A DNA stretch of 64,000 bases. Source: Takakia lepidozioides (Eukaryota; Plantae; Bryophyta). Below, piece after piece: positions 2,455 to 35,727 of this stretch; the stretch's first letter is position 1; each line of letters starts with the position of its first letter. A program made the position numbers and the translations under genes. The notes below the pieces were generated by a model. The model did no database searches. It was not told the origin of the DNA and worked only from the letters and a program-made list of their open reading frames with translations. The stretch covers positions 57,598,001-57,662,000 of the forward strand of contig CM060733.1 in NCBI GenBank assembly GCA_030704615.1, read 5' to 3'.

Positions 2455-5400
2455 TCACTTGATACTTTCACCTTTCCTCATACTCTTCTCTGGCCACAGA
2501 GTCACCGTGCCTTTCACGTGCGCTAGTGTGGTCTGGGGGGGGGGGCATCGTCCACATTTGGGCAAGGCAATGTAACACTTGGAAGCATGATCTCGTGGAC
2601 TTTCACCTTGTACCACCCGGATCGAATGTCCTTGCAGTGGAACTTTTCAACCCCGGTTGTAACGGTAGCCTTTAAGAGATCCAAGCAAGAAAAGGTTGGG
2701 CGCAGTTTACAAGGAGCACCTGAGAGCATTGTACACACAAGATCTGATATCTGCAGACACCAACATCAGGGTCCACTCAGCAACAAACATAGCAATGACA
2801 GGGTGAAAGTCAAGCGCAGCTGGGCATGGAAACGATCTTGGTTGCCACAATACTGAATCAGCAGCCAATTCACGGTGTACCAACGTACCTTGAAGCGAAG
2901 CTCGTCGCTGAGGGTGGCAACTGAGGAAAGCTGCCCACGTGTCTTCAACTGCAGCAGCAAAAAGAGGTTTAGTCAGACGGATAAGAATAACATGAACTCT
3001 GGTGGTTGCAATGGTATAAACACACCTCCACGGAGCAAGCTAACAAACACCCTGCTCAGACCCTAGCACTACAACTTCCTGGCAAAAATAACCCTACTAA
3101 AAACCAGCCAGGCAAAGCAAGGAGCCATGAATGCATGCCTGGGGAACCACGTCCTGCTGCGATGATGGTGCCGGGGACAGCCCACTCCTCTTGCTCACTT
3201 GCAATGAATACACATTGCAATGCTTCAAGAAGTGTATCCATAAAGGAAACCAACCAAGTAAGTTTGCGGAGAGGGGCTGGGAACAACCATACCTTGGGCG
3301 CTGCCTCCTCATGCCGGGGGGGGAATCCGGAATGTTGCCGCCGTAGCACTATGGTCGTAGGCGCAGGACCCACCTTCTTCACATTCGACCCCACTGCCAC
3401 TCCCTGTACATGTGGTCCCTGCAAAACATATAGTGCCAGCCTTGCGTGAGAGGGCATCCAGGGGGAACAAAACAAACATGGACTTTGGCTTCGATGTCAT
3501 GTTGCAAACAGTAAGGTTAGTTTCACCTGCATGGGCGCAGAAGTACTTCCCCCAACGACCCCATCCTCTCCCACATTCAAGCTGCCAGTCGGGGTCAGCT
3601 TCCGCGTGCTTGTGAAGACACGCACATCCTTGGAGCAAAACAAATCTTGGCAGTAGGGCCAGACTGTTTCTAAAAGGTAGTCTGAATCGGGCCCCTCACT
3701 GACATTGCCAGTGACATCAAACGACAATGGATGGACCATGTTCAAAGGGGAGTTCCCCCTCCCCTTGTGTGGTGAATCATCCACTAGGAGGGTGTTGGAT
3801 TCGTTAAATCCAGAAAATTCCGACCACACCCTCGACAGTCTCTTCTGTAAGTTTTGTACGGCAGGCCCTTTTGTGGGGTGTGGCTCTGTCAAGGGGTCAC
3901 ACTCCTCTTGTGACCACACAAAGAGGGGAGAACCCTTGACCCCCTGCATGACCACTTTGAAGATGTCTGCAACATTCCCCTTGGAAGCACAGGACCATAT
4001 CCCAACGTAGAAATACCGGAAGAGAAGGTTTAAAAACTCGCAGACCTGGGGCCTTGGGAAAACATACTTGTTGGTGGTCAACACCCATGGCCAATGACGC
4101 CTCGGGTTGGGCTGAAAGTTAGGAATAGAGTGGCACAGGATCCCGTTCAGGTCTAGAACAATTAGTTTCAATTTTTCTATGAAAAGAGCTTTTGAAGGGG
4201 TGTCACGGGGTCTCACCTCAGTGGGTTGGGAGACAACAGTCACCCCGGAGGGCAAAGTTTCGGTCCCCCTGCAGCCTGGACCAGGCAAACTACCACCCTC
4301 TCCCCCTACAGCTTCCCCTTTCCCCCCATCATGAGCAATGACCCCCCCATCGTCCATGTCATCCCCACCAACTTGCTGGACCTCTCCCTCTTCAACGAGT
4401 GGACCCTGCCCCCCACTATGAATATCATCAACAACAGCCCGGACCTCTGTCACATCCCTACCCACTACAATTACTTCCTCCTTGTCAGGTACAATGGTCG
4501 CAGCAGGGGGGTCTTCCATAATGCCACCCGTCACACCCCCTTTTTGCCCCATCATGAGTTCCACTATCTTCTTCAGTTGTGCTTCCATTCCCCTCTCCCG
4601 CTCCGCAGAGAGAGCCGCAAGCCTCTCCAGGGCCCCGATGCGGGCTGCCATTGAGTTCCCCGCTCCCTACGCATACAAACACCCACCCGTACTGTTAAAA
4701 ACCAGAAGAAGAGGCCGAATGTGCAGGATTTTAGGCATTCGGAGATGGCTAGGTTTGGCATAACACCCCTCATGTACCATGCGTGGGGGCCCCACATACC
4801 CACCAAATCTTAGTACAACAACAGATTCATGAATGGAAACCGGACTTCAAAACATACCTGGCTCAAAACAGACTCTGATGGGGTGCCAGTCGCAGCGTTC
4901 TTGCACTCCGCCCCGAGCTCGGACAGTGACGGGCTCCGCGCTTTGCGTCTTTTCTGTATTTGCCCATCCACACACTGTCAGTACAAAATGCCAGGAGCAT
5001 ATGGACAAAGCACTGCCCTGCATATCACATAACAACTAATTCTGCACAAGCAATAAAACCCACTCGTGGGTGTCTCTTCCATCAGAACATGCCACAACGT
5101 AAGAGCAATGAGAAGGGGGTGAGGGAGATTACCAAACGGGCTGCTTGGCCTGCAACTCCTGCCCGGCCCCAACGCGAGGGGTTCGTGACACAAGCACGCG
5201 CTTGCTTCATCCCTTCAACCTTTGCAAGTCCACGAGGGGACTCCCAGTAGGCAACAAGCTTATCCCAATAGGCGGGTTCAGTGTTCATTGGCCTCACACC
5301 AGTCTTCGCCCATTTATCTTTCAGTTTTGCTCTTTCTCCTTTCATTATCTTCCCACATTGCTTCACTATAAAATCACGATTGGCAGGGATAGGTGTGTAC

Positions 5401-9771: not shown

Positions 9772-12378
9772 ATGAGTTCCCCTCGCCCATGCGGAGGACT
9801 TCCAATTAATCACCCCTGTAGACAGAACACCCGAGATGACAGGTTGTGGGAAAGAGAAGTGGCACGTGCCCGAGCCCTTGGGCTTTCAAGGATGCCATGC
9901 CCATGTGAACGTTGTTTGGGCACTACAAGTAGATCTGAGGACGGTGTGCGCACACATCTCCTTCACCACAAAAGACATGAAGCATTTCGGGTGTGGATTG
10001 GAGATGGACCTGCAGACGAAGACGATGAGGAGTGGGCACAATTGGACAATGCACACCCCCGAGGGAGCCATACAGACAGGCCAGACGAGGACTATGTCAT
10101 GGGCGCAGGACATGAACCAGGCATGGACGGAGGGGTGGAGATTACTCGAATGTTGCAGGAAGCATTCCACATCATGGACGATGCTGAAGAGGGGGACGGC
10201 GCTGCGACAACTGGGGATGGTGATGACGCAGGAAATGAAGGCATTCACGTGGGGGAAGGCGTGGAAGGAGGTGGAGATGAGAATTGAATTCTGCACACAT
10301 GACACTAGAAGAAGCATGTGTGCCACTGTACGAGGGATGCAAATCCACAAAGCTTGCTGCCACCATGCTGTTGATGAACCTGTGCACAACCCACGGAGTC
10401 TCAGACCATTTTGTGGACGAGTTGTTCTCTTTGCTTCGGCTGAACTTGCTTCCACAACCAAATGAAATGCCAAAAAGCTGTCACATGGCCAACCAAATGA
10501 TTGGGAAGCTCGGCCTCAACTACGTGAAAATACATGCATGTCCAAAAGGACATGTACTTTTCAGAAGAGAGTACAAGGATGCTATGGAGTGCCCCAAATG
10601 CGGTGCAGCCCGATACCATGATGTGGGCAGGTTACAACAGCCAGCCAAGGTGTTGAGGCACTTTCCCCTTATCCCCCGTCTATTACGAATGTACAAATGC
10701 AAGACCATTAGTGAGCTCATGACTTGGCATTCCAGGAATGCCTCAAACGATGGTTTGGTAAGGCATGTCCCAGATTCCCTTGCATGGAAGCATATAGATG
10801 CAACTTGGCCCGATTTTGCCGAGGACCCACGCAATGTGCGATTGGCTGTATCTACGGATGGAGTAAACCCATACGGATCAAAGAGTTGCACATGGTCCAC
10901 ATGGCCCGTGCAGTTGGTGGCATACAACCTGCCACCATGGTTGACAACAAAGAAATTCTTTGTCATGTTGTCTCTCTTGATTCCAGGCAAGGAGTCCGTG
11001 ACAAATGCAAACATAGATGTATATTTGCAACCATTGATTGAAGAGCTACAGGAACTATGGATTGGAGTTGAAGCTTACGACATTTTGAAACCAGTAGGGC
11101 AACGGAGTTTCACCCTCCGTGCCATACTCATGTGGTCAATCCACGATTTCCCCGCATATGGCCTTATTGCGGGTTGCAAGACGAAGGGCTACAAAGGGTG
11201 CCCCATTTGTGGGCCCTATGTGGATTCACGGCACTCAAAGCCACTAGGGAAGACAATATACATGGGGCATCGACGTTACCTTGCAAGAAACCACCCCTAC
11301 CGACGAGCAGGAAGGCACTTCAATGGATGTGTTGAAAAGAGAATGGCACCAAATGCTGTGACACCGGAGGAGACATTGCAATTTGCAAAGGAGAAAGAGG
11401 CGTTCATGGAGATTGGAGGGAGAAACGGAAGTAGTGCGGATCCAGCCATGGAGCACGGGGTGAAGCGCCGGACAATCCTTTGGGATTTGCCATATTGGAA
11501 GGTGCATGAATCCCCCCCCCCCATTCACTCACTTTCTTTCACATTGTGCTTCCTGGAATTACCTTTACTGTCAGGAGTCCTTCCACCAACTCCTAAGTCA
11601 GTGTAACTACTATGCAGTAGATGTTGAAGTCGTACACCTCACTGTGGAGAGGATCGTGGAGTTGTTGAAAGCAGAATGTAGTAACATGGACAACTTCTGC
11701 CACATATTCTACTTTTTTTGCCCATAGAACTTGGTCTCATGGGAGGACATTTGGCATTTCAGAACCTCTTGCAGCGGTACCTCCTGGACCCCATGCATTG
11801 TGAGAAGAACTTCTGCGAGAACATTCTGAAGACTATCTTTGGGGAGAAGGATACGATAAACGTACGAAAGGACATGGGGAGATTGAAGGGATACGGTCAC
11901 ATCTGTGGCTAAGGCCTGATCCAAATAGGCCAGGCAAAGTGCTCATGCCAGCAGCATCATACGTCCTGACCAAATCAGAGCAAGAGGATTTTTTGAAGAC
12001 ATTGGGAGCCATGAAAGTGCCAACCGGATTCTCGGGTGTTTTCCAAAAGCATGCCATAAACAAGAAATGGTCGGGGATGAAGTCACATGATCTACACGTG
12101 ATGATGCAACAGATTTTGCCAGTGTGCATTCGGGGTACGATGGCGCCAGGTCCTCGAACAGCCATAATGCGTGTAAGTCGAGTGTTTAGGAAGATTTGTG
12201 CGAAGGTGTGGGATCCGAGGGACATTACATCGTTGCATGAGGATGTGGCTATGACCCTATGTTTGCTGGAGAAAGAATTCCCTCCATCATTCTTTGACGT
12301 CATGACGCACTTGCTAGTGCATCTTGTAGAGGAGTTGCATGTGTGTGGGCCGTAGCCAGCCGGTGGATGTACCCCAGG
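9772..12378 (+). mobile_element. CACTA/En-Spm TnpD transposase (transposase-associated domain, Transposase_21, DUF4218), frameshifted and 3'-truncated
   Basis: MPCPCERC..VRTHLLHH; KIHACPKGHVLFR; LRHFPLIPRL; RNVRLAVSTDGVNPY; YNLPPWL; IDVYLQPLIEEL; WSIHDFPAYG; intron ~11502-11762 (PYWK|NLLQRYLLDPMHCEKN); GMKSHDLHVMMQ; FPPSFFDVMTHLLVHL; ends abruptly after RWMYP. Confidence 0.92.
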
Positions 12379-12595
12379 GATGCCTCGGCGTGAGCCTGGT
12401 CACGTGAGCACGTGAGCGCGTGAGCGCGACTGCGCTCACGCCACGTCACCTTGCGCAAATGCCACATCACGGGTCTCAGTCCACGTCATCACACGTGGAG
12501 GCCGAGTCACCACGCACCCAGAAAGAAGTGGAGTGTATTCCCGCGGATTGGCACCCTTTACCGCGGAAACAAGCTGGACGACATAATAAAAGGCA

Positions 12596-12950
12596 TTGAA
12601 TAAATGATGGATGAATGTACAGTTGGATGATAAACAGATGGATGAGTTTGAAAAATCTATGTAGATGGATGAATGACGGATGGATAAGAGTAAAATGGAT
12701 GAATGTATAATGGATGTTGAGCAATGACAAAAATTCATGACAGGAAGATGCATGACCAAATCTTTTGACGAATGCACAAAGTATATGAAATGAGTGTGGA
12801 AGGTTTGTGGGGTGGATTAAAGAGTACAGAGGATGAATGTACAATGGATGTTGTACAAAGGAAGCTTTCATGAATGGAGCACGCATGAATACAGTGTAGA
12901 TGAATGCACAATGGATATGAGAAGAGTCAGGAAGGTTTGTGAGATGGATT
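12596..12950. repeat. Degenerate GGATGAATGTACA/GATG-rich tandem repeat
   Basis: Many ggatgaatg(t/c)a(c/t)a and gatggatg units between TnpD and the 3' end of the MTase-like gene. Confidence 0.6.
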
Positions 12951-13078: not shown

Positions 13079-16000
13079 TCAGTCTGACTCAGAGTCAGTA
13101 CAATGTATCCCCTCTTCCTCTGCATCTAAGTCTAAGTATTTTAGAACACCGGATCCACGCTGGATACACCTACGGCTGGACACTAAAAAGTCAGGGGATA
13201 GGGACTCGGACGCGTGAAGTGCCATTGCTTCGGCATAAACAGGGAGCAGAAAATTGGAAAGGGGGCTGTCGAAAACAGACTCGCCAGAAATGACTGTATC
13301 TCCTGAAGATCCACCGCTGGCTTTCCTGAAAGACAGCCTGAAAAAGTTATTACTGTAACTTTGATGTTATCGAGAAATTGAGTATGACTCCCAAAGAGGG
13401 TTTAGCACTTACTCACATGAAAAGTCGTTGTCGACCTGCTTATCTTCGGGATCGTCATCATTTCGAATATGAATACGATCAGTCTGTGTGCCTGAAGTGG
13501 AGCCAGACAAAAGGGGGAGGAGCACTGTGTTGTAGAGGTCAGAATCACCCTCCATACCAAAAAGGCTTCTTCCGCCTGCCTTGCATGCGTGGTAAGTTGC
13601 TCCTGCACCAGACAGGAGAACATAAGCAGTTTGGAGGAGGGGATTTAAGCAGATGAAACTATTGAAAGGAAACCAATTCGGAAGGGAGAAAACGAACCTG
13701 TGGACACAGAAAGATCGACCACCCGTGCAGAGCGGTGGCTGCATGACTCCAGCAGTATTTGCATGAATGCTGGTGACTTTTCCTTTGCACCTCTCCAGGG
13801 AGTGCCATCTGGTCTCTTCAGAGTCTGACTGGACTGCATGAAGTTGTACAAAATGTCATCGACATGGGGCTCATAGGGGGGGTTGACGAAACAACCCTGG
13901 TCAGAAATCTCAAAGCTGCGGATGGAGGATGGTGTCTTTGATGTGCGAATCCTCCGCAGGCAGATCGCCTCGAACATCCTCGTCTGCCAAAGATAGCAGG
14001 TTAGTGTGGTAAACACAATCTAAAGTGGAAGTGTGTACATCGGCTATTCAGAACTCTGACACCAAAAAAACCATGAATCGTTGATGATCGGTGTCGATCA
14101 TAAAACATTCTACTAGAGTGGAGCTGCAGAGAAAATTGAAACTCATGATCAAAGCATAAGCAGAAGGCAGACGGCATACCAGCTGACCAGGGAAACCCCC
14201 TTTCACAAGGTAGAGGCTGTTCACACAATTCCATGTGCGCAAAACTTCAAACCCTGAAGACTTGAGGTATGATGCCAATGCCCGACGACTATCATTGTCA
14301 CATGACTGAAAAAGCAGAAGTGTCCCTGCATCAGAGAGGAAATTGTTACAGAACCCGAATACCCAACTCCAGTAGTTGTCCTCGAATTTGTTCCACCCTG
14401 ACGTCTTGCCCTTTGGAAGAACTTCTGGGACAGCCTGGCCATCCGGGATGTCGAGAATGACAATGTCGGCCGCATAAGTTTTCTGCACACCGCACACGAA
14501 GGTGGGACCTGTGCTCACCTGCAACAGACATGTTTTTTATAAGAACGATGGCAAGAATGTTTTCAAAGAACGAGACTGAAATACTGAAAACGAAACATTC
14601 AGAGAAAAAGGAAAGAAAGTGGAATTCTCACCAGATTGAGGAATGAGATTATATTGTCCCAGGTAGGGGATGGCACCCCAGTGTATCCTCTCTTTCGACT
14701 CTGCATCATCGAAAGCCAACCCTCATTAACAATTTTCATCTCTCCTGCTGAATCAGAACGGGAAGGGTGTGGCTTGGCATCGAACACGCACTGAAGAGTG
14801 CGGGTATATCTTCCAGCACTAAAGTCCTGCCCACTCTCCATCTCCTTTTCATTCTCCTTCCCCTTGTCCTTTTCCTTCTCTTTGGACTTGTCTTTGTCCT
14901 TTGGCTTTGCTGGTGAGATGGCTATGACATCAACAGCCTTGTCTTTTGGTTTGCGGCCCGCCTTCTTTCCCTTCTGCGGCGTTCCCTGAGCATCAGGCTC
15001 CTTGGCAGCCAAGGTTGCTATGTTTCGTTGATACTCCTCGTCAGTCAAAGGCGCCAGCATCTCAGCGTTATTGTTCAAGTATTTCATATGCTGTTCTTGA
15101 AAGGTCGTGTGCTCAGGTGGGCAGTCAAGGTACCACCCACAGTCTCTGAAGTGAGAAGGACTCCAGTCCTTCAATATCCCTGCAGTATACATGGTTGGAT
15201 CGTTTGCAGGGTCCGACCACATGTCAAGATAGTCGGGAATTCCGCTCAGGTGATTTCCTTCCATAAGCACATATTTCGTGTACCTGAAAAAAGGAGATGA
15301 ATCCCAACCCACAAAAGCGCTCAGTGAGAAAGATGCAAGTAGAACAGAAAGAATAAAACATGGATACAAATGGCTCTGACAACTGCTCCAAGGACCTTTC
15401 AAAACCACACTACTGCTCCAGATATGAATGTCGTCAACGCCATTCAGAACATTCCATTCCATGACACTGTAAATACATCCTAATCCAGGTGAAAGCAAAT
15501 ATGCGATTAGAAATGACACAGACATAGAAGTGAATGTCGTCAACGACATTCAAGAATGAAGCCAAATTATTACTGAAATGAAGCAAAATCACAGGGTGGA
15601 AATAAAAAAATTGAGTAAGGAACCAACCAGGAAAACTCAATGCACATTCATAACGAACCTATCACTGAGGACCTCACAACATCACTGTATGTGAATGGCG
15701 TCAACGCCATTCACAAAAATACAAAAAAGAAACCAATTACTTAGCTCCCCAATCCATGAAAATTGAATTTGTCGTTTTTTAATAATACAGACACAGCTGT
15801 GAATGTCGTCAACGACATTCACTTTGGATTTCTTAAAACAGAGCTTATGAAGCCTCCATATTCATCGCAAGAGGAAAAAACAATGCAGAACAACTGAATG
15901 TCTGCATTGACATTCAGCAAAATGAAGTGATCAACCCTCATTGTATCCTCTATGGACATTACAAAAATTTAAATAACCTTGAGGACCACACAACAACTCC

Positions 16001-18712
16001 GTATGTGAATGTCGTCAACGCCATTCAAGGACATTATCAATTCTACTCAGGGACAATATAATTGCACCCTTAGATCCTAACCAGGTGAATTCATATACTC
16101 GCTTAAGAATGACTCAGACAAAGAAGTGAATGTCGTCAACGACATTCAATCTGGATCTAAGATTGCAATCCATATGAAGCCACATTTTTTCCCAAAAAAA
16201 CAGTAGAGTTTCAAGTATGACATTTCACCTGTACACAACTCGCATCATGGCCCACTCTCCTCCAACCTGACTGTCAAAGTCGTTGGACCGTAAAATGTTA
16301 CCATCTTTGGAGAACTCCCGGAAAAAACAGTATCTCCACGTGAGACCTCTCCACTTCCTTATGTATGCCTCCAATGACATTTGGGGAGGGGAAACAATCG
16401 CAATGTTCAGGTCCTTCAAAGTCTGATCCAGCACAATGACGGCGCGCTTTTCCAGCTGCAAATAGAATATTTGTCAGAATTGCAAAAAAGAAACACATCA
16501 CATACTTGAAGATAAGAAACAGCATGTTCGAATACACACCTGACTCCAAAATGTAGCCTTGTGGAGCCAGTTATCAAACACCAAATCACTGATTCCTTCC
16601 ACCTTTGTGCCAGGCTGTATGGTGCTCTTTGGGAACTGATTCAAGTCCTTTACTGTTTGATCTGAGTTCCATATCTCCAGCCACCTTATTTTTGTTTGTG
16701 GGTCGACCATCGATATGGCCAGCCGGTGCAATTTCTCCTGCTGCATCTCCGGATGCACATGCTTGTCATAGTGTGTTTTGATCTGCTGAAGGAACTCAGG
16801 ACCAAGTCCAGGATCTACTATTCTAAGCTGCTTTCCGAAGGCTGACATCAATTTGGTTCTTCGCATCTCAAACTCCTTCTTTATTGCAGCTTCCACACCC
16901 TTTGATGTCCTTAGTTCCTCTGGTGTAGTGCGGTAATATTCGGATTTTCCCTTCTCAGCTGCCTCTGCCAGTTCTTGCTGCATTCATTCAAGTAGTGATT
17001 AGCTCCGAAGGGACTCTAAACATGTATTCGAAAAGTAAACAGAGTACAGACTCGGGCTTACCGCATACATGTACTCCAGAAACGCCTCTCGTGTCAAAGA
17101 ATACCAAGTGCCTGCAGCTCTTCCTGTTTCGCACTTCTTGATGATATTGGGTGGTAGTACTGTCCGAAAATCATCCAGCTTCATCAGACCAATCCTCTGA
17201 ATTCGGAATAGTGTGTGAACCAAGCTTGTTGTCACATGCGATTTCTCTGTCGATCTGCAAAAACATTGAAAACATTGCATTCCTTACCACTGTTTTTTGA
17301 GGATCAACAAGACACTACAGAGGGAATCAAATCTCCTGGATGACTTACTTGTGTTCACGTCGTGCATATGAGTAAGTAGCCTAGCGATGTCGTTTCCTGG
17401 ATCCAAAACCATTGCCTCCACAAACATGCTTGTCTTTGTCTTTCGAATGGTGTTTCTGAATGTATCCCATCCATGCAGCAATCGGTGGTTGCCGTCCCCA
17501 GACGTAGAACATGTGGTTGCAAATTGCTGGTGTTCTTTCCCATCATGAGGCCCAGCTCGAACTCCTCATTGGCATCTTCTCCAGCACTCATCCCAGTTAT
17601 CACTGATCTCTGGAGAAACTAATGTGCTTTTCCCATTTATATCCGTCAGTGACACATAAAACTTGTGCACCAAGTCTATATCCATGCACAAAATCACTCT
17701 CCATTTTGTTATGTCGTGGGAAGAGGTGGTGGACGCACAACAGGCATTGATATCATCCGGCACAGAGGTATGTCCAGACGCCCTCCAGATACGAGCATGT
17801 CCCTTATAACCTCCTGAGGTTTACTTCTGGAATGACATGAGTTCTTTCACCTTGTCAAGGTAGTGCACTTCGGATTCATCTGCTTCATCTGTATTCTCTG
17901 AGCTTTTTGCGGACTCGTCCCCATCTCCAGATCCTTTTCCCCTCTGATCCTGTAGGCTTCGACCTCACAGTTTTTCTGCACGATGCCCATTCAGTTCTGA
18001 GTAAGTCATTTGCAAATAGTGAATGGCGGTAACGACCATCACTCTGTATCAAGGAAACTCACCATGAATGGTGTGAAAGAATTCAGACAATCCCACAGAA
18101 AAGCCGAGACTGTCGTATTCAAAACAAAGCGAGAGCAATAGCGAACGGCGTTAACGACAATCACAAAGATAACGACCTGCCGGATCGGTGTTGTGTAATG
18201 ACATACATGTGCAACTGATTGGCGGCAACGACATTCAGTGTAGTTTAGGGCGGATAGTAAGTGCAGACTCTCTCTTCAAACACATATGTACATAAATGTC
18301 ATCAAGCAGAATCGAATGGCGTTAACGACGCTCGCGATTCAGTATTCCTGCTAAAGAATGGAAGAGGAAGGACTCCTTGAAAGGCAATCACCTAGACAAT
18401 AGATAACAACTTCACTGGCACCTTCTTAGGTTGAACTTGATCCCCTTCTTGCAGCTTTCCTCTTCCCTCTCACATCTGCTGGATTTCTGTCTGCGCAAGG
18501 GTTGCTTGACCTTCTTCAGGTTCGGCGTTCCGCGTGCTTCCACCTTCTTCAGTGTCCTTCGATTCATCTCTGCCTCCACAGGCTGGCGCACTCTTATCGG
18601 CCGCTGTGTCGCAGCCGTGCTAGCTCAGTTTCCGTCTGCTCTTTTTTTGAATCAGTCTCCGCGTTCACCTGCTGCCTTGGCCCTGTGTTCTCCAACAAAC
18701 GACGCCTCGTCA
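13079..18712 (-). CDS. Spliced ParB-like (DGNHR) + beta-class N4C/N6A DNA methyltransferase-like fusion protein
   Basis: Exons ~18712-18422, 17949-~17349, ~17254-17062, 16977-16540, 16455-16229, 15283-14632, 14518-14180, 13983-13698, ~13602-13417, ~13337-13079. MTase motifs in beta order: ADIVILDIPD (motif IV, DPPY-like), NFLSDAGTLLLF, TRMFEAICL, WRGAKEKSPAFMQILLESCS, RVVDLSVSTG|ATYHACKAGGRSLFGMEGDSDLY (motifs I-II). MFYVW-DGNHRL at ~17480-17510 needs a 1-nt correction. Several indels in the 5' exons. Confidence 0.75.
15425..16148. repeat. Intronic array of seven 22-bp palindromes TGAATGTCGT-CA-ACGACATTCA
   Basis: Copies start at 15425, 15531, 15692, 15800, 15895, 16006 and 16127, all inside intron 15284-16228. 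Confidence 0.9.
18020..18334. repeat. Second intronic array of degenerate copies of the same 22-bp palindrome
   Basis: Copies at 18020 (TGAATGGCGGTAACGACCATCA), 18142, 18216 (TGATTGGCGGCAACGACATTCA) and 18313, inside intron 17950-18421. Confidence 0.75.
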
Positions 18713-20215: not shown

Positions 20216-20715
20216 NNNNNNNNNNNNNNNNNNNNNNNNNNNNNNNNNNNNNNNNNNNNNNNNNNNNNNNNNNNNNNNNNNNNNNNNNNNNNNNNNNNNN
20301 NNNNNNNNNNNNNNNNNNNNNNNNNNNNNNNNNNNNNNNNNNNNNNNNNNNNNNNNNNNNNNNNNNNNNNNNNNNNNNNNNNNNNNNNNNNNNNNNNNNN
20401 NNNNNNNNNNNNNNNNNNNNNNNNNNNNNNNNNNNNNNNNNNNNNNNNNNNNNNNNNNNNNNNNNNNNNNNNNNNNNNNNNNNNNNNNNNNNNNNNNNNN
20501 NNNNNNNNNNNNNNNNNNNNNNNNNNNNNNNNNNNNNNNNNNNNNNNNNNNNNNNNNNNNNNNNNNNNNNNNNNNNNNNNNNNNNNNNNNNNNNNNNNNN
20601 NNNNNNNNNNNNNNNNNNNNNNNNNNNNNNNNNNNNNNNNNNNNNNNNNNNNNNNNNNNNNNNNNNNNNNNNNNNNNNNNNNNNNNNNNNNNNNNNNNNN
20701 NNNNNNNNNNNNNNN
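20216..20715. other. Assembly gap (500 N)
   Basis: Run of exactly 500 N. Confidence 1.
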
Positions 20716-24700: not shown

Positions 24701-27700
24701 GCGGTCTTAGACATTGGTGATTCAATGGGGCGCTCTAGGAAGACAACCAAGGGCAACAACTTCAACTTGAGAGTTTCTAATCGGTTTGATGCTCTGGATG
24801 AGGTTGAATCCAAACAGCCAGAAGGACAAGATGCTTCTAAGTGTACAGAACCTGAACGTCCTGAATCTGAAGGATTTGGTACTCTGAATGGTTTACCAAT
24901 CCTCAAGGTTTACACAAGACGAACAAATTCTATACATGGGGTAATTGTCCCCAAGCCGTCAGATGGACAATCTGTCCCTAAGTGTGCAGAGCCTGAACGT
25001 CGTGTAACTGAAGGATTGGATACTCTAAATGGTTTACCAATCCTCAAAGTCTACACAAGACGAGCAAAATCTATACATGGGGTAATTGTCCCCAAGCAGT
25101 CTGACGGACAATCTGCCCCTATGTGTGTGGAGCCTGTGCGTCGTGTAACTGAAAGATTTGGTACCCTGAATGGTTTACCAATTCTCAAAGTTTACACAAG
25201 ACGAGCAAAATCTACACATGGGGTAACTGTCCCCCCTTTGCAGAACGGTTGGCCGTCCAGGAGCAATCACAAGCTACCTAGACGACAAACAATTCACACG
25301 CAAAGGGCTGGCTTGCGGCTGGCCACTTTCAACTTCTCAGGGTTGACCAACCAAAGGAAACAACTTGAAGTGGGACAAGTTCTTCGGACTAATGATATTC
25401 ATATCTGTGCTGGGCAAGAAACATGGGAAACGTTGGATAAACTGGTTGGAGATGTCATTGGTTATAAACGGGCAGGTAAGATGTGTACTCTCAAGGCAGC
25501 CTCTGCCAAACGCGGTCAAAAAGGGGTCGGATTCTTTGTCCGTGATTTCTTGTTTGACAATTGTGAGCAGACGGTTAATTAACTGTCTAGAAGAGCTTCA
25601 GCTTTTGACCTTGAATAACAGGACAAGAGGTGACCAAGTGCATGTTGGAGGTGTCAAGGCTATAGCCCTTGCACGACACTTTGAGAACAGAACGGGACGG
25701 GTAGCTCAGTGGTAGAGCACCCCACCGGAATGGGGGAGGTCCTAGGTTCAATCCCTAGCCCGACCACACGCCAGTGGTTTTCCAACATGGTATCAGAGCC
25801 AAGGTTGGGGCGGTGGTCAGAATGGGTGGGCATTAGCTATAAGGGCTATGCCTTGAGGGGGAGTGTTGGAGTGTCAAGGTTATAGCCCTTGCACGGCACT
25901 TTGAGAATAGAACGGGACGGGTAGCTCAGTGGTAGAGCACCCCACCGGAATGGGGGAGGTCCTAGGTTCAATCCCTAGCCCGACCACACGCCAGTGGTTT
26001 TCCAACAGTGCAGTGGACTCGTGAGAAACCCCAAACTGGGGAACGTTCCATTGTGGACTAAATCATAATGGACAAAATTTTGTTCCCCCAGTGTGCCAAT
26101 CTGTTGATCGACAGAACTGATATTGGTACCTCTGACCACTTCCTGGTTTGGACTGAGATCAAAAGGTGTTTTCCCACCACCAAGAGATCTGTGAAACGTT
26201 CGATTCGGAAGTGGCGCATAGAAAAATTCCACAATGAGGAGGTCAAGGCTGAGTACGTCCAGGCCTTGCAAGAGTCTCTCCCTCATTTTGTCCAATTGCT
26301 CCAAGAACTTCAGTCACGCTCTGTTAACGCAAGAAATGAAGTCGAAAGAGCAGTGGACTCTTGGGAGAGTTTCGTTTCCTCCGTGGCTGACAAGATCATT
26401 GGGAGGAAACTAATTGTCTGCGGTAGAGCAGTTAATTGGTGGACTAATGAGATTAAACTCAAGATAGCTGAGAGACGAGCCCTCTATAAAGAGTGCTGCA
26501 ATTTGGAAACCAACAGAGAATTGTGGGCGAGGTACTACCAGCTCCGTAAAGATATCAATCAGCTTGTTAGGTCTCAGAAGAAATTATACTGGGACAAGTT
26601 ATACAGTGAAATAAACTCAAACCACCATGGTGGTAATGACAAGAAATTCTGGTTGGCCCTTCAACGTTTGTACAAACCGAAAAATGGTCAGCAAGTACAA
26701 GCGCTGAAGACTACTAAAGGTGCAGTGGTGACTTCATCGGTTGACATTGTCAAAACCTTTGAAACTCACTACAGTATCCTTGGCAGAACTTCTAGGTCTA
26801 ACAGTGAGGGGTCTTGTGCTGAATGGAGGGACAGTTGGAAAAACTGTTCCTATGATTTAAAACAGCCCTGATGAACTGGAGTATATTTCAATGGCGTATA
26901 ATGCTCCCATTAGTTCTTCTGAGATTGTGGAAGCAATTGAACATTTAAATGGATATAAAGCTGGTGGACCTGATGGTATTGTCAACGAGCTTATCAAGCA
27001 TGGTGGCGATCCCATGATAGAGGCCCTAGTTCTCCTCTTTAACCTTATCTGGAAGACTGAATTGATCCCCTTTCGCTGGCGACAGGTTGTCATTGTCAAT
27101 CTATACAAGAAGGGTGACAGAGAAGAACCGGGGAACTACCGTGGCATCACGCTCCTCAATGCTGTTGGCAAGACATTCTGCAGAGTTATAAGTACTCGTC
27201 TCGAGGTTGATCTGTAGTCTAGAGGTTGTTTCCACGAAGGCCAAGCTGGCTTTCGGCGAAACAGGGGCTGTGTGGATCATATCTTCACTCTAAGCCAGAT
27301 TATCCAGGGAAGGAAAAAAGAAGGGAAACCCACTTATGTCTTTTTCCTGGATGTCAAAAAGGCTTATGACACAGTGTGGAGGGATGGCCTATGGTTCTGC
27401 CTCTGGTCTTGTGGGATCAAGGGAAAGATGTGGAGAGTTGTCCACAACTTGTATGCTCACACCAAAAGCTGTGTCACTGTTAATGGACAGAAGTCCAACT
27501 TCTTTGACATAGACCAAGGTGTAGCTCAAGGATGTACTCTCTCCCCTCTGCTCTTCAATGTTTTCATCAATCAACTCCTCGAGGATGTGGAAAGTGAGGG
27601 ATTTGGGTTAAGGGTGGGTGATACCACCATACCAGCCCTTATGTTTGCGGATGACTTCGCAGGCATAGGGGAGACTCCAACCAATCTCCAGGAGTTGATT

Positions 27701-29871
27701 GATTGCGCGAAGAGATACTTTGATCTTTGGGGGCTAGAGGCTAATGTCAGCAAATGTGCAGTGGTAGCATTCAACGACAGAGGAGAGGGAGGAAGTGATC
27801 TTAAGTGGCAGTGGGGTAGCCAAGAGATCCCGGTCCTCCCTTCCTACACTTACGTGGGCGTTGAGTTCTCCTCTAATTGTAATTGGGATGCACATATCCG
27901 GAAAGTTGTTCAAACTGGCAAGGGCAAAGCTCTGGGGCTCACTAAATTTTTCCACTGCAGAGGGGTCAACTCTGAGGTTAAGAAAACCATGCTTTGTCGC
28001 GTTATTAGACCTGCCTTGGAGTACGGATCTGCTATATGGGTTGATAACTCCAACCAGGCTAAGTCTCTAGAATCCATTCAAGTGGGGGTGCTTAAGGAGT
28101 GTATGTCAGCATGCTCCAAAACAGCCAATGTGGCTGTTCGGGGTGAGTTTGGCATTCCGTCCTTAAGCTCCCGACGAGATGAATTCAAGGTCAGATGGTG
28201 GGGTCAGCTGCAACATATGCCCAACACCAGATATCCTAAATTAATCGACTCTATATCTTGGAAACAGGACCGCCCTGTCAAACAGGCTAAGTCCTTGCAG
28301 AAGAGAGTAGAAGAGATCCTCCAGGACCTGGACCTGGATCCGCAAGTCTTGACCCTGCTGGATAAATCTGACTTAGAGGCTGTAGTGTCCTCAGCCATGT
28401 CTGTTGCCATGAGATTGTCTGATGAAAATGAAGTTACGCAGAAAACTTCCCTGAACTTGTTTCCAGTCTGTGACATGGGGGAGGACATCTTGGATGACCT
28501 CAAGGGTCTACCCACTCTCGGCACTAGACTGAAATTTAAACTCAGGGCAGGAAGCCTACCTTTGAACAGCAAACAGAAGCAGAGAGGAAAGGGAGAGTGC
28601 AATTGCCCGTTGTGTGGGCAATCTGAAGACAGTATTCATTTTCTGATACACTGTCCGGGGTTCTCTCACCAAAGAGACGCTCTCTTCAAATCTATCAAGG
28701 GAATTGTGCCTGTACCCCTGTTTACCAACTTTGAAAGTCTCGAGGCTGAGCCAAAAACCCAGGCCCTCCTGAGGCCTAGTTTTTGGGCAAATCACACACA
28801 GCAGATTGATGCTTGTGTGAAGGGATTTCTAGAGGATATCTGGAAAACCCGGATTAATTCCTTATATGGAGGTAAGTCTTACTACCAACGTCAGCCCCTG
28901 ACAGAGGTAGGTTCTGTCCCTTTTGTTCCCGCTCAAACTGGGCGCGGGGTCAATGGCCACAAGGCTACGGCAAACAACGTCTTATGAGTACAATCTCTCT
29001 CTCACCCACACACACCTATGGCTTGTGTGAGGGCTTTCTAGTGGATATCTGGAAAGCCAGAACTAATTGTTAATACCAAGGTAAGTTACACTACTGGAGT
29101 GAACCCCTCACAAAGGTAGTTCCTATGCCCTATGTTTCCGTCCAAAGTGGGCACAGGGTCTATGGCCAAAAGGCTACGGCCAAAAAAGTCTTATGAGTTC
29201 ATTTTCTCACACATACACACATTTGGGTTCCTGTGGATGGTATACAGTTTCTCTCTTTCTTTTTCTAGTCTCTCGTTTATCTGTTCACTCCAAGGTCTAC
29301 GGCCAGCAGGCTACAACAATCAATGTCTAGTGGGTAGATCTCCTATCCTATGGGCCCTCTATGTCCCCGATGGCCACAATTACAATTTGCTTATATCTGT
29401 TTATCAGCTGTACCTAAAGGCCATGGAAATTTTCGGTTTAGTCGTATATACGCTGGTGGTTGAAACCCCACAACTCCCTCTAGGAGGGTTAGAAACCTTT
29501 TGAGACTATGCTAATATGATTACGCCTTGGCCAAAGTTCCAAGGGGAATAGTGCGAGTAAATGCTGTGTCATCCATTTTCCACCATTGGAGTGGTAAATG
29601 CAGTCACTTCCACAGTTGTCTGAGGTAAGGTGGAGGCTTCATAACTGGTCCTGGAATCAACATCATTTCTAGAACGATGTCCATTCCAGCGTGGTTCAAT
29701 GGCTTTGTGTCATTCATAGACTAAACATCTGTGGCCTTTTTGGATGCAGAACTAGCGGGTATTGACCGAGTAGTGCTAGTACGAGTTGTCAAGATTTTGG
29801 AGCAACGGGGAAAGGCTGCCATCTTCAAAGGAACATCAACTGATGATGAAGGCATCAAGTTTTCTGCATAG
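21713..29871 (+). CDS. VPS25: ESCRT-II subunit VPS25, 6 exons
   Basis: Exons 21713-21765, 22132-22271, 22563-22616, 23516-23604, 23777-23852 and 29750-29871 splice in frame: MAADFTFPYFYYYPPYFTLQPVRDTREKQIELWKELIL...GRAEWLDKGHRKCLILWRRIQDWA...ELAGIDR...KAAIFKGTSTDDEGIKFSA*. Confidence 0.95.
24839..25235 (+). repeat. ~3 x 141-bp coding tandem repeat in the LINE N-terminal region
   Basis: 47-aa unit (K/M)C.EP.R...E...TLNGLPILKVYTRR..S.HGV.VP repeated three times in ORF 24362..25582. Confidence 0.9.
25643..26007 (+). mobile_element. TRIM with tRNA-like LTRs (Helenus-type non-autonomous LTR retrotransposon)
   Basis: LTRs 25643-25787 and 25864-26007 (TGTTGGA...TCCAACA), PBS TGGTATCAGAGCC (tRNA-iMet) at 25788-25800, PPT GAGGGGGAG at 25855-25863, 5-bp TSD GTGCA. 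Confidence 0.95.
25695..25766 (+). ncRNA. tRNA-like Pol III unit inside the 5' LTR (identical copy at 25915-25986)
   Basis: Acceptor GGACGGG/CCCGACC (one mismatch), D-arm GCTC-AGTGGTA-GAGC, T-arm CTAGG-TTCAATC-CCTAG, non-canonical anticodon arm; TTTT lies ~12 nt downstream. Confidence 0.75.
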
Positions 29872-33209: not shown

Positions 33210-35727
33210 ATGTACTCATAAGACGTTGTTTGCCGTAGCCTTGTGGCCATTGACCCCGCGCCCAGTTTGAGCGGAAACCAAAGGGACAGAACCTACCTCT
33301 GTCAGGGGCTGACATTGGTAGTAAGACTTACCTTTATACAAAGAATTGATTCGGGTTTTCCAGATATCAAATCCCTTCACACAAGCATCAATCTGCTGTG
33401 TGTGATTTGCCCAAAAACTAGGCCTCAGAAGGGCCTGGGCTTTTGGCTCAGCCTCGAGACTTTCAAAGTTGGTAAACAGAGGTACAGGCACAATTCTCTT
33501 GATAGATTGGAGGAGAGCTTCTCTCTGGTGAGAGTACCCCGGACAGTGAATCAGAAAATGAATATTGTCTTCGGGTTGCCCACACAACGGGCAATTGCAC
33601 TCTCCCTTTCCTCTCTTCTGTTTACTGTTCAAAGGTAGGCTTCCTGCCCTGAGTTTAAATTTCAGTCTGGTGCCGAGAGTGGGTAGACCCTTGAGGTCAT
33701 CCATGATATCCTCCCCCATGTCACAGACTGGAAACAGGTTCAGGGAAGTTTTCTGCCTAACTTCATTTGCATGAGACAATTTACTGGTAACAGACATGGC
33801 TTTGGACACTACAGTCTCTAAGTCAGATTTATCCAGCAAGGTCAAGACTTGCGGGTCCAGATTCAGATCCTTGAGAATCTCTTCTACTCTCCTGCCAGGA
33901 CTTGGCCTGTTTGACAGGGCGGTCCTGTTTCCAAGATATACAGTCGATTAACTTAGGGTATCTCGTGTTGGACATGTGTTGCAACTGACCCCACCATCTG
34001 ACCTTGAATTCATCTCGTTGGGAGCTTAAGGAAGGGATGCCAAACTCACCCCGAACAGCCACATTGGCTGTTTTGGAGCATGCTGACATGCACTCCTTAA
34101 GCACCCCCACTTGAATGGATTCTAGAGACTTAGCCTGGTTGGAGTTATCAACCCATATAGCAGATCCGTACTCCAAGGCAGGTCTAATAACGCGGCAAAG
34201 CAAGGTTTTCTTGACCTCAGAGTTAATCCCTCTGCAGTCTAAAAATTTAGTGAGACTCAGCGCTTTGCCCTTGCCAGTTTGAACAACTTTCTGGATATGT
34301 GCATCCCAGTTACAGTTGGAGGAAAACTCAACGCCCAGGTGAGTTATAAGTACTCGTCTCAAGGTTGATCTGGAATCTAGAGGTTGTTTTCACGAAGGCC
34401 AAGCTGGCTTTCGGCGAAACAGGGGCTGTGTGGACCATATCTTCACTCTAAGCCAGATTATCCAGGGAAGGAAAAAAGAAGGGAAACCCACTTATGTTTT
34501 TTTCTTGGATGTCAAAAAGGCTTATGACACAGTGTGGAGAGATGGTCTATGGCTCCGCCTCTGGTCTTGCGGAAACAAGGGGAAAATGTGGAGAGTTGTC
34601 CATAACTTGTATGCTCACACCAAAAGCTGTGTCACTGTTAATGGACAGAAGTCTAACTTTTTTGACATAGACCAAGGTGTAGCTCAAGGATGTACCCTCT
34701 CCCCTCTGCTCTTCAATGTTTTCATTAATCAACTCCTCGAGGATGTGGAACGTGTGGGATTAGGGTTAAGGGTGGGTGATGCCACCATTCCAGCCCTTAT
34801 GTTTGCGGATGACTTCGCAGGCATAGGGGAGACTCCTTCCAACCTCCAGGAATTGATTGATTGCGCGAAGAGGAGGGAGGAAGTGATCTTAAGTGGCAGT
34901 GGGGTAGCCAAGAGATTCCAGTCCTCTCTTCCTACACATTGCAAAATATCTTGCCAACAGCATTGAGGAGCGTGATGCCATGATAGTTCCCTGGGTCTTC
35001 TCTGTCACCCTTCTTATATAGATTGACAATGACCCCCTGTCGCCAGCGAAAGGGGATCATTTCAGTCTTCCAGATAAGGTTAAAGAGGAGATCTAGGGCC
35101 TCTATCATGGGATCGCCACCGTGCTTGATAAGCTCGTTGACTATGCCATCAGGACCACCTGCTTTATATCCATTTAGATGTTCAATTGCTTCCACAATCT
35201 CAGAAGAACTAATGGGAGCGTTGTAGGCTTTTGAAATATACTCCAGTTCATCAGGGCTGTTTTGAATCATAGGAACAGTTTTACCAACTGTGTCCTTCCA
35301 TTCATCAGAGGACCCCTCACTGTTAGACCTTGAAGTTCTGCCAAGGATACTGTAGTGGGTTTCAAAGGTTTTGACAATGTCAACCGATGAAGTTACCACT
35401 GCACCCTTAGTAGTCTTCAGCGCTTGAACTTGCTGACAGCTTTTCGGCTTGTACAAGCATTGAAGGGCCAACCAGAATCTCTTGTCATTACCACCATGGT
35501 GGTTTGAGTTTATTTCACTGTATAACTTGTCCCAGTATAATTTCTTCTGAGCCCTTACAAGCAGATTGATATCTTTACGGATCTGGTAGTACCTCGCCCA
35601 CAATTCTTTGTTGGTTTTCAAATTGCAGCACTCTTTATAAAGGACTCGTCTCTCAGCTATCTCGAGTTTAATCTCATTGGTCCACCAATTAACAGCTCTA
35701 CCGCAGACAATTAGTTTCCTCCCAACG
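33210..35727 (-). mobile_element. 5'-truncated family A LINE with an internally inverted RT segment (34341-34937 on + strand)
   Basis: ORFs 34932..35783(-), 34430..34966(+), 33829..34362(-) and 33216..33845(-) are consecutive pieces of the ORF seen at ~26400-28987. Confidence 0.9.

Follow-up and report, generated by a model that had tools for sequence, protein, structure and literature searches.

Positions 13,079–18,712 of a 64,000-nucleotide stretch of the genome of the bryophyte Takakia lepidozioides (assembly GCA_030704615.1, contig CM060733.1, positions 57,598,001–57,662,000; hereafter the window, meaning the whole stretch at its full length) contain a multi-exon gene on the minus strand whose predicted product joins a ParB-like N-terminal part to a methyltransferase-like C-terminal part. 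An earlier note, made from the sequence alone, had described such a gene and suggested that an adjoining CACTA transposon carries it for self-marking or anti-silencing. The gene, its junctions, and its methyltransferase-like module prove to be real, which partly confirms that observation; the interpretation attached to it is partly supported. Our analysis shows that the window gene is a member of an intron-containing gene family that occurs in multiple copies in plant-like genomes.

The gene model was obtained by reading the sequence in its three frames and by mapping onto it, with tblastn, the open reading frames (ORFs) of L009. This 5-kb metagenome scaffold is the closest relative; it has the full set of exons, ordered as in the window gene, and its first exon is intact. 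The stop codon lies at 13081–13079. Across exons 2–9 (17254–13082) the phases agree, all borders are GT-AG, and 2,569 coding bases contain no stop (856 codons); this stretch includes the four C-terminal exons that had been proposed to splice in frame (exons 6–9), and that proposal holds. Each L009 query ORF matches the window once, which indicates that the window holds a single gene copy. The junctions between exons 5 and 6, 6 and 7, and 7 and 8 match ORFs that run uninterrupted in relatives (P0050, P0038, and others), and the exon 7/8 junction, which falls within motif I, is read straight through both by P0050 and by an intronless ORF (L011:13636–13920).

In the order of translation, and all on the minus strand, exon 1 (17349–17964) carries the ParB-like domain and is broken. 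Exon 2 (17062–17254), which follows the ParB domain (WYSLTREAFLEYMY), has 50% identity to L009 in a stretch of 52 residues, and exon 3 (16540–16977), which encodes a helical middle region, is identical at 72/148 positions without frame corrections. Exon 4 (16229–16455) was placed from the sequence, its frames, and the L009 tblastn match. Exon 5 (14632–15283; tblastn, no frame corrections) encodes the conserved block CGWYLDCP and a linker of low complexity rich in Lys, together with the helix that leads into the methyltransferase-like domain. Exon 6 (14180–14518; 64 relatives, no frame corrections) contributes strand 4 and the equivalent of motif IV, D-I-P-D (14452–14441), followed by a conserved WN, while exon 7 (13698–13983; tblastn with L009, no frame corrections) supplies motif X and the first half of motif I (PWRGAKEKSPAFMQ...VVDLSVSTG). 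Exon 8 (13413–13602) completes motif I and adds motif II (ATYHACKAGGRSLFGMEGD); a family profile aligns this part to motifs I and II of M1.HpyAVI and CcrM. Exon 9, with the stop codon (13079–13325; coding 13325–13082), encodes an acidic C-terminal tail; its acceptor and frame were read from the sequence, and the last-exon ORF of L009 matches 13282–13085 by tblastn. Farther upstream, a short minus-strand ORF at the start codon chosen in the earlier note (18597–18712) has weak similarity to an upstream ORF of L009 (11/27). It may represent a 5′ exon, or else an upstream ORF; where the gene begins on its 5′ side is uncertain.

The FYVW-DGNHRL motif that had been reported near the N-terminus is present in both its pieces, FYVW at 17509–17498 and DGNHRL at 17496–17479, but these lie in different frames, with an extra G at 17497 between them. 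A frameshift-aware alignment of the ParB-like stretch (17955–17353) to the intact L009 exon requires eight single-base frame corrections (near 17832, 17726, 17662, 17574, 17534, 17497, 17477, and 17422), with 111/209 positions identical, and the exon 1 donor site has a 2-base insertion relative to L009. The window copy as assembled cannot encode the ParB domain. The same aligner introduced no corrections and met no stops in the later exons 3, 5, 6, and 7 (the four tested). Identity to L009 is highest of all in exon 1, at 53%.

A ParB fold and an amino-methyltransferase fold in one polypeptide

An intact member of the family has about 1,000 residues, which form an N-terminal ParB fold, a helical middle region, and a C-terminal beta-class amino-methyltransferase fold. 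An exhaustive phmmer search of 1.84 billion proteins with exon 6 returned 64 matches at E ≤ 1e-3, and a ParB-exon profile matched at least 435 proteins at the same threshold. The relatives come from contigs in Logan, ENA, and JGI, and the exon 6 matches are mostly exon-sized fragments; the resemblances are far above chance. Several diverged copies occur inside single assemblies, and the contigs of some relatives have no introns and resemble spliced transcripts. Throughout, window exons were searched separately and never joined, and folds and profiles were built on natural proteins of relatives.

The ParB-like N-terminus claimed in the earlier note was recovered on the closest relative, whose exon 1 is represented by protein P0093. 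An AlphaFold2 model of P0093, built from 120 alignment rows, has a predicted local distance difference test score (pLDDT) of 85. In a Foldseek search with this model the top ~48 rows are all ParB, Noc, KorB, PadC, sulfiredoxin, SerK, or SbnI (best E 2.9e-3), and VIA-align superposes it on Myxococcus xanthus ParB with Z 9.4 and a root-mean-square deviation of 1.9 Å over 90 residues. Among 120 relatives, the D, G, N, and R of DGNHR are invariant and the H is present in at least 90%; the invariant or near-invariant blocks of the exon are IPLCR, VRP, FYV, DGNHR..AW, and MH..N. DGNHR is a candidate counterpart of the glycine-arginine phosphate-binding motif GxxR of this superfamily, which reads GERR in ParB and GCHR in Srx. 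The predicted structure identifies the N-terminal part as a ParB fold of the ParB/Srx superfamily.

The C-terminal part carries the motifs in the permuted order that the earlier note had described, with motif IV preceding the S-adenosylmethionine (SAM)-binding motif. ADIVILDIPD lies at 14470–14441 and VVDLSVSTG|ATYHACKAGGRSLFGMEGD spans the exon 7/8 junction, so that D-I-P-D is found in exon 6, motifs X and I in exon 7, and motifs I and II in exon 8. Foldseek, VIA-align, and profile comparison, all made on relatives, agree with the beta-class assignment. An AlphaFold2 model of P0050:265–580 (pLDDT 74) retrieves only beta-class enzymes at the top of the Foldseek list, with CcrM best (8e-11), followed by M.BceJIV, M1.HpyAVI, M.MboIIA, M.PvuII, the rotifer N4CMT, and M.RsrI. 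VIA-align Z scores for the same model are 14.8 for CcrM, 14.6 for M.BceJIV, 14.4 for M.MboIIA, 14.2 for M.PvuII, and 13.9 for rotifer N4CMT, ranging down to 12.6. A 13-row family profile of motifs X, I, and II matches the Protein Data Bank (PDB) sequences of M1.HpyAVI (2.7e-5) and CcrM (2e-4), with M.MboIIA, M.RsrI, Mod, and the rotifer N4-cytosine enzyme following at the same position with weaker scores. Scores against Pfam PF01555 fall below the gathering cut-off of 26.7 bits (20.8 for P0050, 25.9 for the L011 ORF). Taken singly, the window exon pieces that were tried have no Pfam or PDB-sequence match, and tblastn found no match for exon 7 in phages or for exon 6 in plasmids. On the strength of the modeled structure, we regard as established a beta-class (PF01555-like) N6-adenine/N4-cytosine amino-methyltransferase fold with permuted motif order.

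This domain shares its fold and permuted order with CcrM, M1.HpyAVI, M.BceJIV, M.MboIIA, M.PvuII, M.RsrI, N4CMT of bdelloid rotifers, and MpDN4MT1 of Marchantia, and its motifs X, I, and II align with theirs. In contrast to these enzymes, the family lacks the catalytic tetrapeptide. The earlier note had cautioned that motif IV is degenerate, and this holds for the whole family and not for the window copy alone: across 67 family rows, the first position is D in 51, E in 9, and Q in 5; the second is I, V, L, or Y and never P; the third is P in 58; and the fourth is E in 33 and D in 24 and never aromatic. None of the 67 rows contains (D/S/N)PP(Y/F/W), which makes methyl transfer doubtful. The tetrapeptide is followed in these rows by G-L-P-V-P and then by a nearly invariant WN. 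Motifs I and II read VVD-x-x-A/S-x-T-G ... A-L/M-E; the D, the E, and a single G persist here, and the FxGxG loop has lost its F and its first G to other residues. The methyltransferase-like part could be a noncanonical writer or, more likely, a pseudoenzyme that binds SAM or bases. An NPPY in exon 7 (13871–13882) was considered as the true catalytic motif; it is absent from all relatives and was set aside as a chance occurrence.

Fusions of a ParB fold with an N6_N4 methyltransferase form an architecture that is enriched in phages and prophages, and they have the same domain order as the present family and are likewise linked to mobile elements (PMC12704722). The family gene differs from them in being eukaryotic, with nine or more exons and an extended helical middle region, and in carrying D-x-P-(E/D) instead of DPPY at motif IV. 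We found no sequence-level similarity between the family and phage ParB. Similarity to a phage methylase is weak and extends over 63 residues, and the match that hhalign gives to one phage methylase is weak and local, covering motifs X and I. Descent from a prokaryotic ParB-methyltransferase fusion is plausible. Our literature search found no published description of the fused architecture of the present family.

A scan of bacterial and archaeal genomes with the ParB motif gave one match, L024 (CADCWO010000058.1, 1–4691), in an uncultured Synechococcales cyanobacterial metagenome-assembled genome. This 4.7-kb contig holds a full multi-exon ParB-methyltransferase-like gene together with three GGGTCTCGGATCCGAGACCC palindromes. 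Having introns and palindromes of its own, it was rejected as a prokaryotic relative and is read as a mis-binned eukaryotic contig, that is, as contamination.

Palindrome arrays in introns and upstream regions

Intron 4 of the window gene contains six palindromes of 22–24 nt (15424–16149) of the GTGAATGTCGTCAACGACATTCAC type, with the core TGTCG-N4-CGACA (6 long-form sites vs 0.00 expected). Exact TGTCG-N4-CGACA occurs three times in the window, against 0.01 expected, and all three occurrences are in this intron. Degenerate copies of the same palindrome lie upstream of exon 1 (18020–18335), including a site at 18220 with one mismatch.

The same core recurs in arrays beside relatives in other assemblies, where spacer and flanks are lineage-specific. 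The form TGTCGGATCCGACA is present in five copies in an intron of L001, in 16 copies spaced ~288 bp apart upstream of and in introns of L013, and in 20 copies in L014. Loci L016–L022 carry arrays of TGTCGGGGCCGACA, and L024 has three copies of a symmetric variant, TCTCGGATCCGAGA, upstream of exon 1. The family site consensus is a dyad, T(G/C)TCG-N4-CGA(C/G)A, found in 5′ regions and introns. The L024 variant has matching changes in its two half-sites, a symmetry that speaks for selection on the dyad. Across lineages, the palindromes provide indirect support, at the level of sequence, for a putative protein-site pair encoded in cis, and the idea of self-recognition raised in the earlier note gains support from their conservation as arrays.

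Some of these loci are also organized as tandem arrays, with a period of ~288 bp in L013 (5748–8396 and 12426–14153) and L014 (1–5528) and of ~190 bp in L016 (11642–18354). The tandem units of L013, L014, and L016 contain one palindrome each and lie upstream of and within the gene.

The carrier element and competing explanations

A CACTA TnpD fragment occupies 9772–12355 on the plus strand, where ORF domain matches identify Transposase_21 followed by positions 1–53 of the 114 of DUF4218, cut at 12352. Between the last position of the TnpD ORFs, 12355, and the stop codon of the gene lie 724 bp, in agreement with the ~700 bp given earlier. The proposal that this CACTA transposon carries the gene is not substantiated: TnpD is truncated and runs convergently to the gene, and no CACTA terminal pair was found to enclose the gene. 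Among the longer related loci a TnpD fragment was found near L016 only, where the strand of the ParB exon also carries, 2 kb upstream, a TnpD C-terminus (DUF4218 and DUF4216, without Transposase_21), and TnpD is absent at L011, L012, and L013.

At L011, L012, and L013 the gene has instead a conserved head-to-head (divergent) partner of two large ORFs and ~1,200 residues (L011 3743–6193, L012 3049–7217, L013 599–4251, minus strand). The nearest clusters to its first ORF in a language-model look-alike atlas are MULE or SWIM families (0.91–0.93). Its second ORF has a conserved CxC...CxH SWIM ending, with a Pfam SWIM E of 0.46 and an atlas match that is just a 0.76 SWIM lead. A Mutator-like carrier is favored by the retention of this SWIM-ended partner, in head-to-head orientation, in three diverged relatives; we consider, with moderate confidence, that the carrier is more likely Mutator-like than CACTA, and that the adjoining CACTA fragment is most likely a neighbor in a transposon-rich region and not the carrier.

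We think it probable, with appreciable room for doubt, that the window gene is a broken copy of a multi-copy ParB-methyltransferase-like family whose members travel as DNA-transposon passengers and recognize their own palindromes. The gene would be a passenger of DNA transposons, most likely Mutator-like ones, and its ParB part, together with the adjacent helical region, would bind the palindromes of the element as a dimer, possibly spreading from them as a clamp switched by nucleoside triphosphate. The methyltransferase-like part would then act on element DNA, with the outcome that the element is marked or shielded from host silencing. A fully working ParB/parS-like self-recognition system in land-plant DNA transposons, in which a nucleotide-switched clamp would load at TGTCG-N4-CGACA arrays and spread while the fused, altered methyltransferase writes a mark other than 5-methylcytosine or blocks silencing, is a tentative proposal that we hold to be possible and not yet probable.

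VANC proteins, the anti-silencing proteins of VANDAL Mutator elements, have target motifs that pile up in the noncoding DNA of the element itself. The present family resembles VANC in being transposon-encoded, by our reading, and in having short putative target motifs in element noncoding DNA and introns; it differs in its unrelated protein fold, and binding and loss of methylation are, for the family, hypotheses. The closest published precedent is a set of accessory genes, PAG2 and PAG3, in giant Plavaka (CACTA superfamily) elements of red algae (Bostrychia), described in a 2025 preprint: PAG3 joins ParB to a 2-oxoglutarate oxygenase and has adjacent inverted-repeat arrays, PAG2 joins an N6-adenine methylase to SET, and the cassette is also found in Mutator and other elements (bioRxiv 10.1101/2025.02.11.637652). 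The present family, by our reading likewise a DNA-transposon passenger, also has an N-terminal ParB-like domain, inverted-repeat arrays by the gene, and a DNA-methylase-like module. Unlike the Plavaka genes, the present family, whose host is plant-like, combines ParB and the methylase-like domain in a single polypeptide and has lost the catalytic motif.

Several observations weigh against the passenger reading. The functional chain is one that we infer from folds and site arrays, and the ParB exon has no Pfam or PDB-sequence match, whether searched as single proteins or as a 120-row profile. L009, L011, and L012 have no TGTCG-type palindrome in the DNA examined. Around the gene, no enclosing inverted pair, CACTA-type or other, was found in the window, which leaves the element borders undefined, and the SWIM-ended partner gene was not found in the window either. 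The partner matches no Pfam MULE model nor any other Pfam family, and its probable assignment to Mutator draws on the look-alike search and the SWIM motif. Two loci, the window and L016, adjoin CACTA TnpD fragments. Finally, a shattered exon 1 next to a clean 2.6-kb frame in exons 2–9 is unlike uniform decay. The indels in exon 1 could be real, making this a 5′-dead copy, or they could be assembly errors, as the clean later exons and the top identity of exon 1 allow; in the second case, which counts against a broken copy, the window gene may be intact.

Other explanations account for parts of these data. The gene could be the second ORF of a CACTA element, equivalent to TnpA, with the palindromes as its subterminal binding sites: transposase remnants are seen 724 bp from the stop codon of the window gene and upstream of the ParB exon in L016, and red-algal CACTA-superfamily elements do carry ParB accessory genes. 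The En/Spm TnpA site, CCGACACTCTTA, shares CCGACA with the half-site. However, the window TnpD is cut mid-domain and its remainder was not found elsewhere in the window, its orientation relative to the gene differs from that in L016, the L016 fragment lacks Transposase_21, no CACTA terminal pair surrounds the gene, and three relatives have the other conserved partner without TnpD, all of which makes this reading quite unlikely. We regard as very unlikely that the family consists of host genes, domesticated or never mobile, that merely sit in transposon-rich DNA. Conserved intron positions, an 856-codon clean frame over eight exons, and intronless relatives resembling spliced transcripts would suit host genes, but the diverged copies within single assemblies, the hundreds of protein clusters, the broken 5′ exons of the window, the conserved transposase-like partner, and cis palindrome arrays typical of self-recognizing elements do not.

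A further alternative is that the methyltransferase-like domain is an active N6-adenine or N4-cytosine enzyme with an unusual catalytic loop that writes a self-mark on the element. The fold is complete, the D, the TG loop, and the E of motifs I and II are kept, and strong conservation of the D-x-P-(E/D)-G-L-P-V-P loop and of WN indicates selection on that site; moreover, rotifers and Marchantia have active beta-class enzymes that they gained by horizontal transfer (PMC8885841; bioRxiv 10.1101/2021.02.12.428880). Conversely, the second proline and the aromatic residue of (D/S/N)PP(Y/F/W) are missing from every member, the first glycine of FxGxG is replaced, and all PF01555 scores are under the gathering cut-off, and we consider activity of this kind unlikely. 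To the notion that the resemblance to ParB and methyltransferases is a product of chance or of ORF stitching we give next to no credence. Single window exons do lack Pfam or PDB matches, but natural uninterrupted relatives reproduce the joins, and the high fold scores and the profile matches obtained on such relatives refute this notion.

If intact members bind their own palindromes, the family would represent the second plant transposon-encoded system of sequence-specific self-recognition, after VANC of VANDAL, and one built from a bacterial or phage ParB-methyltransferase architecture; a cassette so far reported in red algae only would also extend to plant-like genomes. Under the more tentative proposal of a nucleotide-switched clamp, a principle of the bacterial partition complex would be in use by eukaryotic transposons for self-protection. 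The family offers a candidate protein-site pair, the ParB region and TGTCG-N4-CGACA, as well as a natural experiment on the beta-class methyltransferase fold after loss of DPPY. The window alone is worth less, as a partly broken copy beside an unrelated transposase fragment.

Other features of the window

Between the TnpD fragment and the 3′ end of the gene, and only there, lie short dispersed repeats of the GGATGAATGTACAATGGATG type (12600–12920; 3 within 3 mismatches vs 0.01 expected), which may be the subterminal region of an element end. Directly after TnpD homology stops, a G+C-rich dyad of repeated CACGTGAGC units (12390–12450) could mark a breakpoint or the terminus of an element. On the other side, a 500-N assembly gap at 20216–20715, 1.5 kb upstream of the gene, limits the search for the other end of the element.

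Elsewhere in the window, a perfect 25/25 inverted pair starts with CACTACAGTATCC at 26767 and ends at 35357, and a second inverted pair, CACTGTCCGGGG, is found at 28649 and 31466. The two pairs could be the ends of elements, of CACTA type or another, around a reverse-transcriptase ORF (27272–28987); their flanking triplets mismatch. A minus-strand ORF at 3500–4651 encodes an NIF/FCP1-like phosphatase domain (E 3.4e-13).

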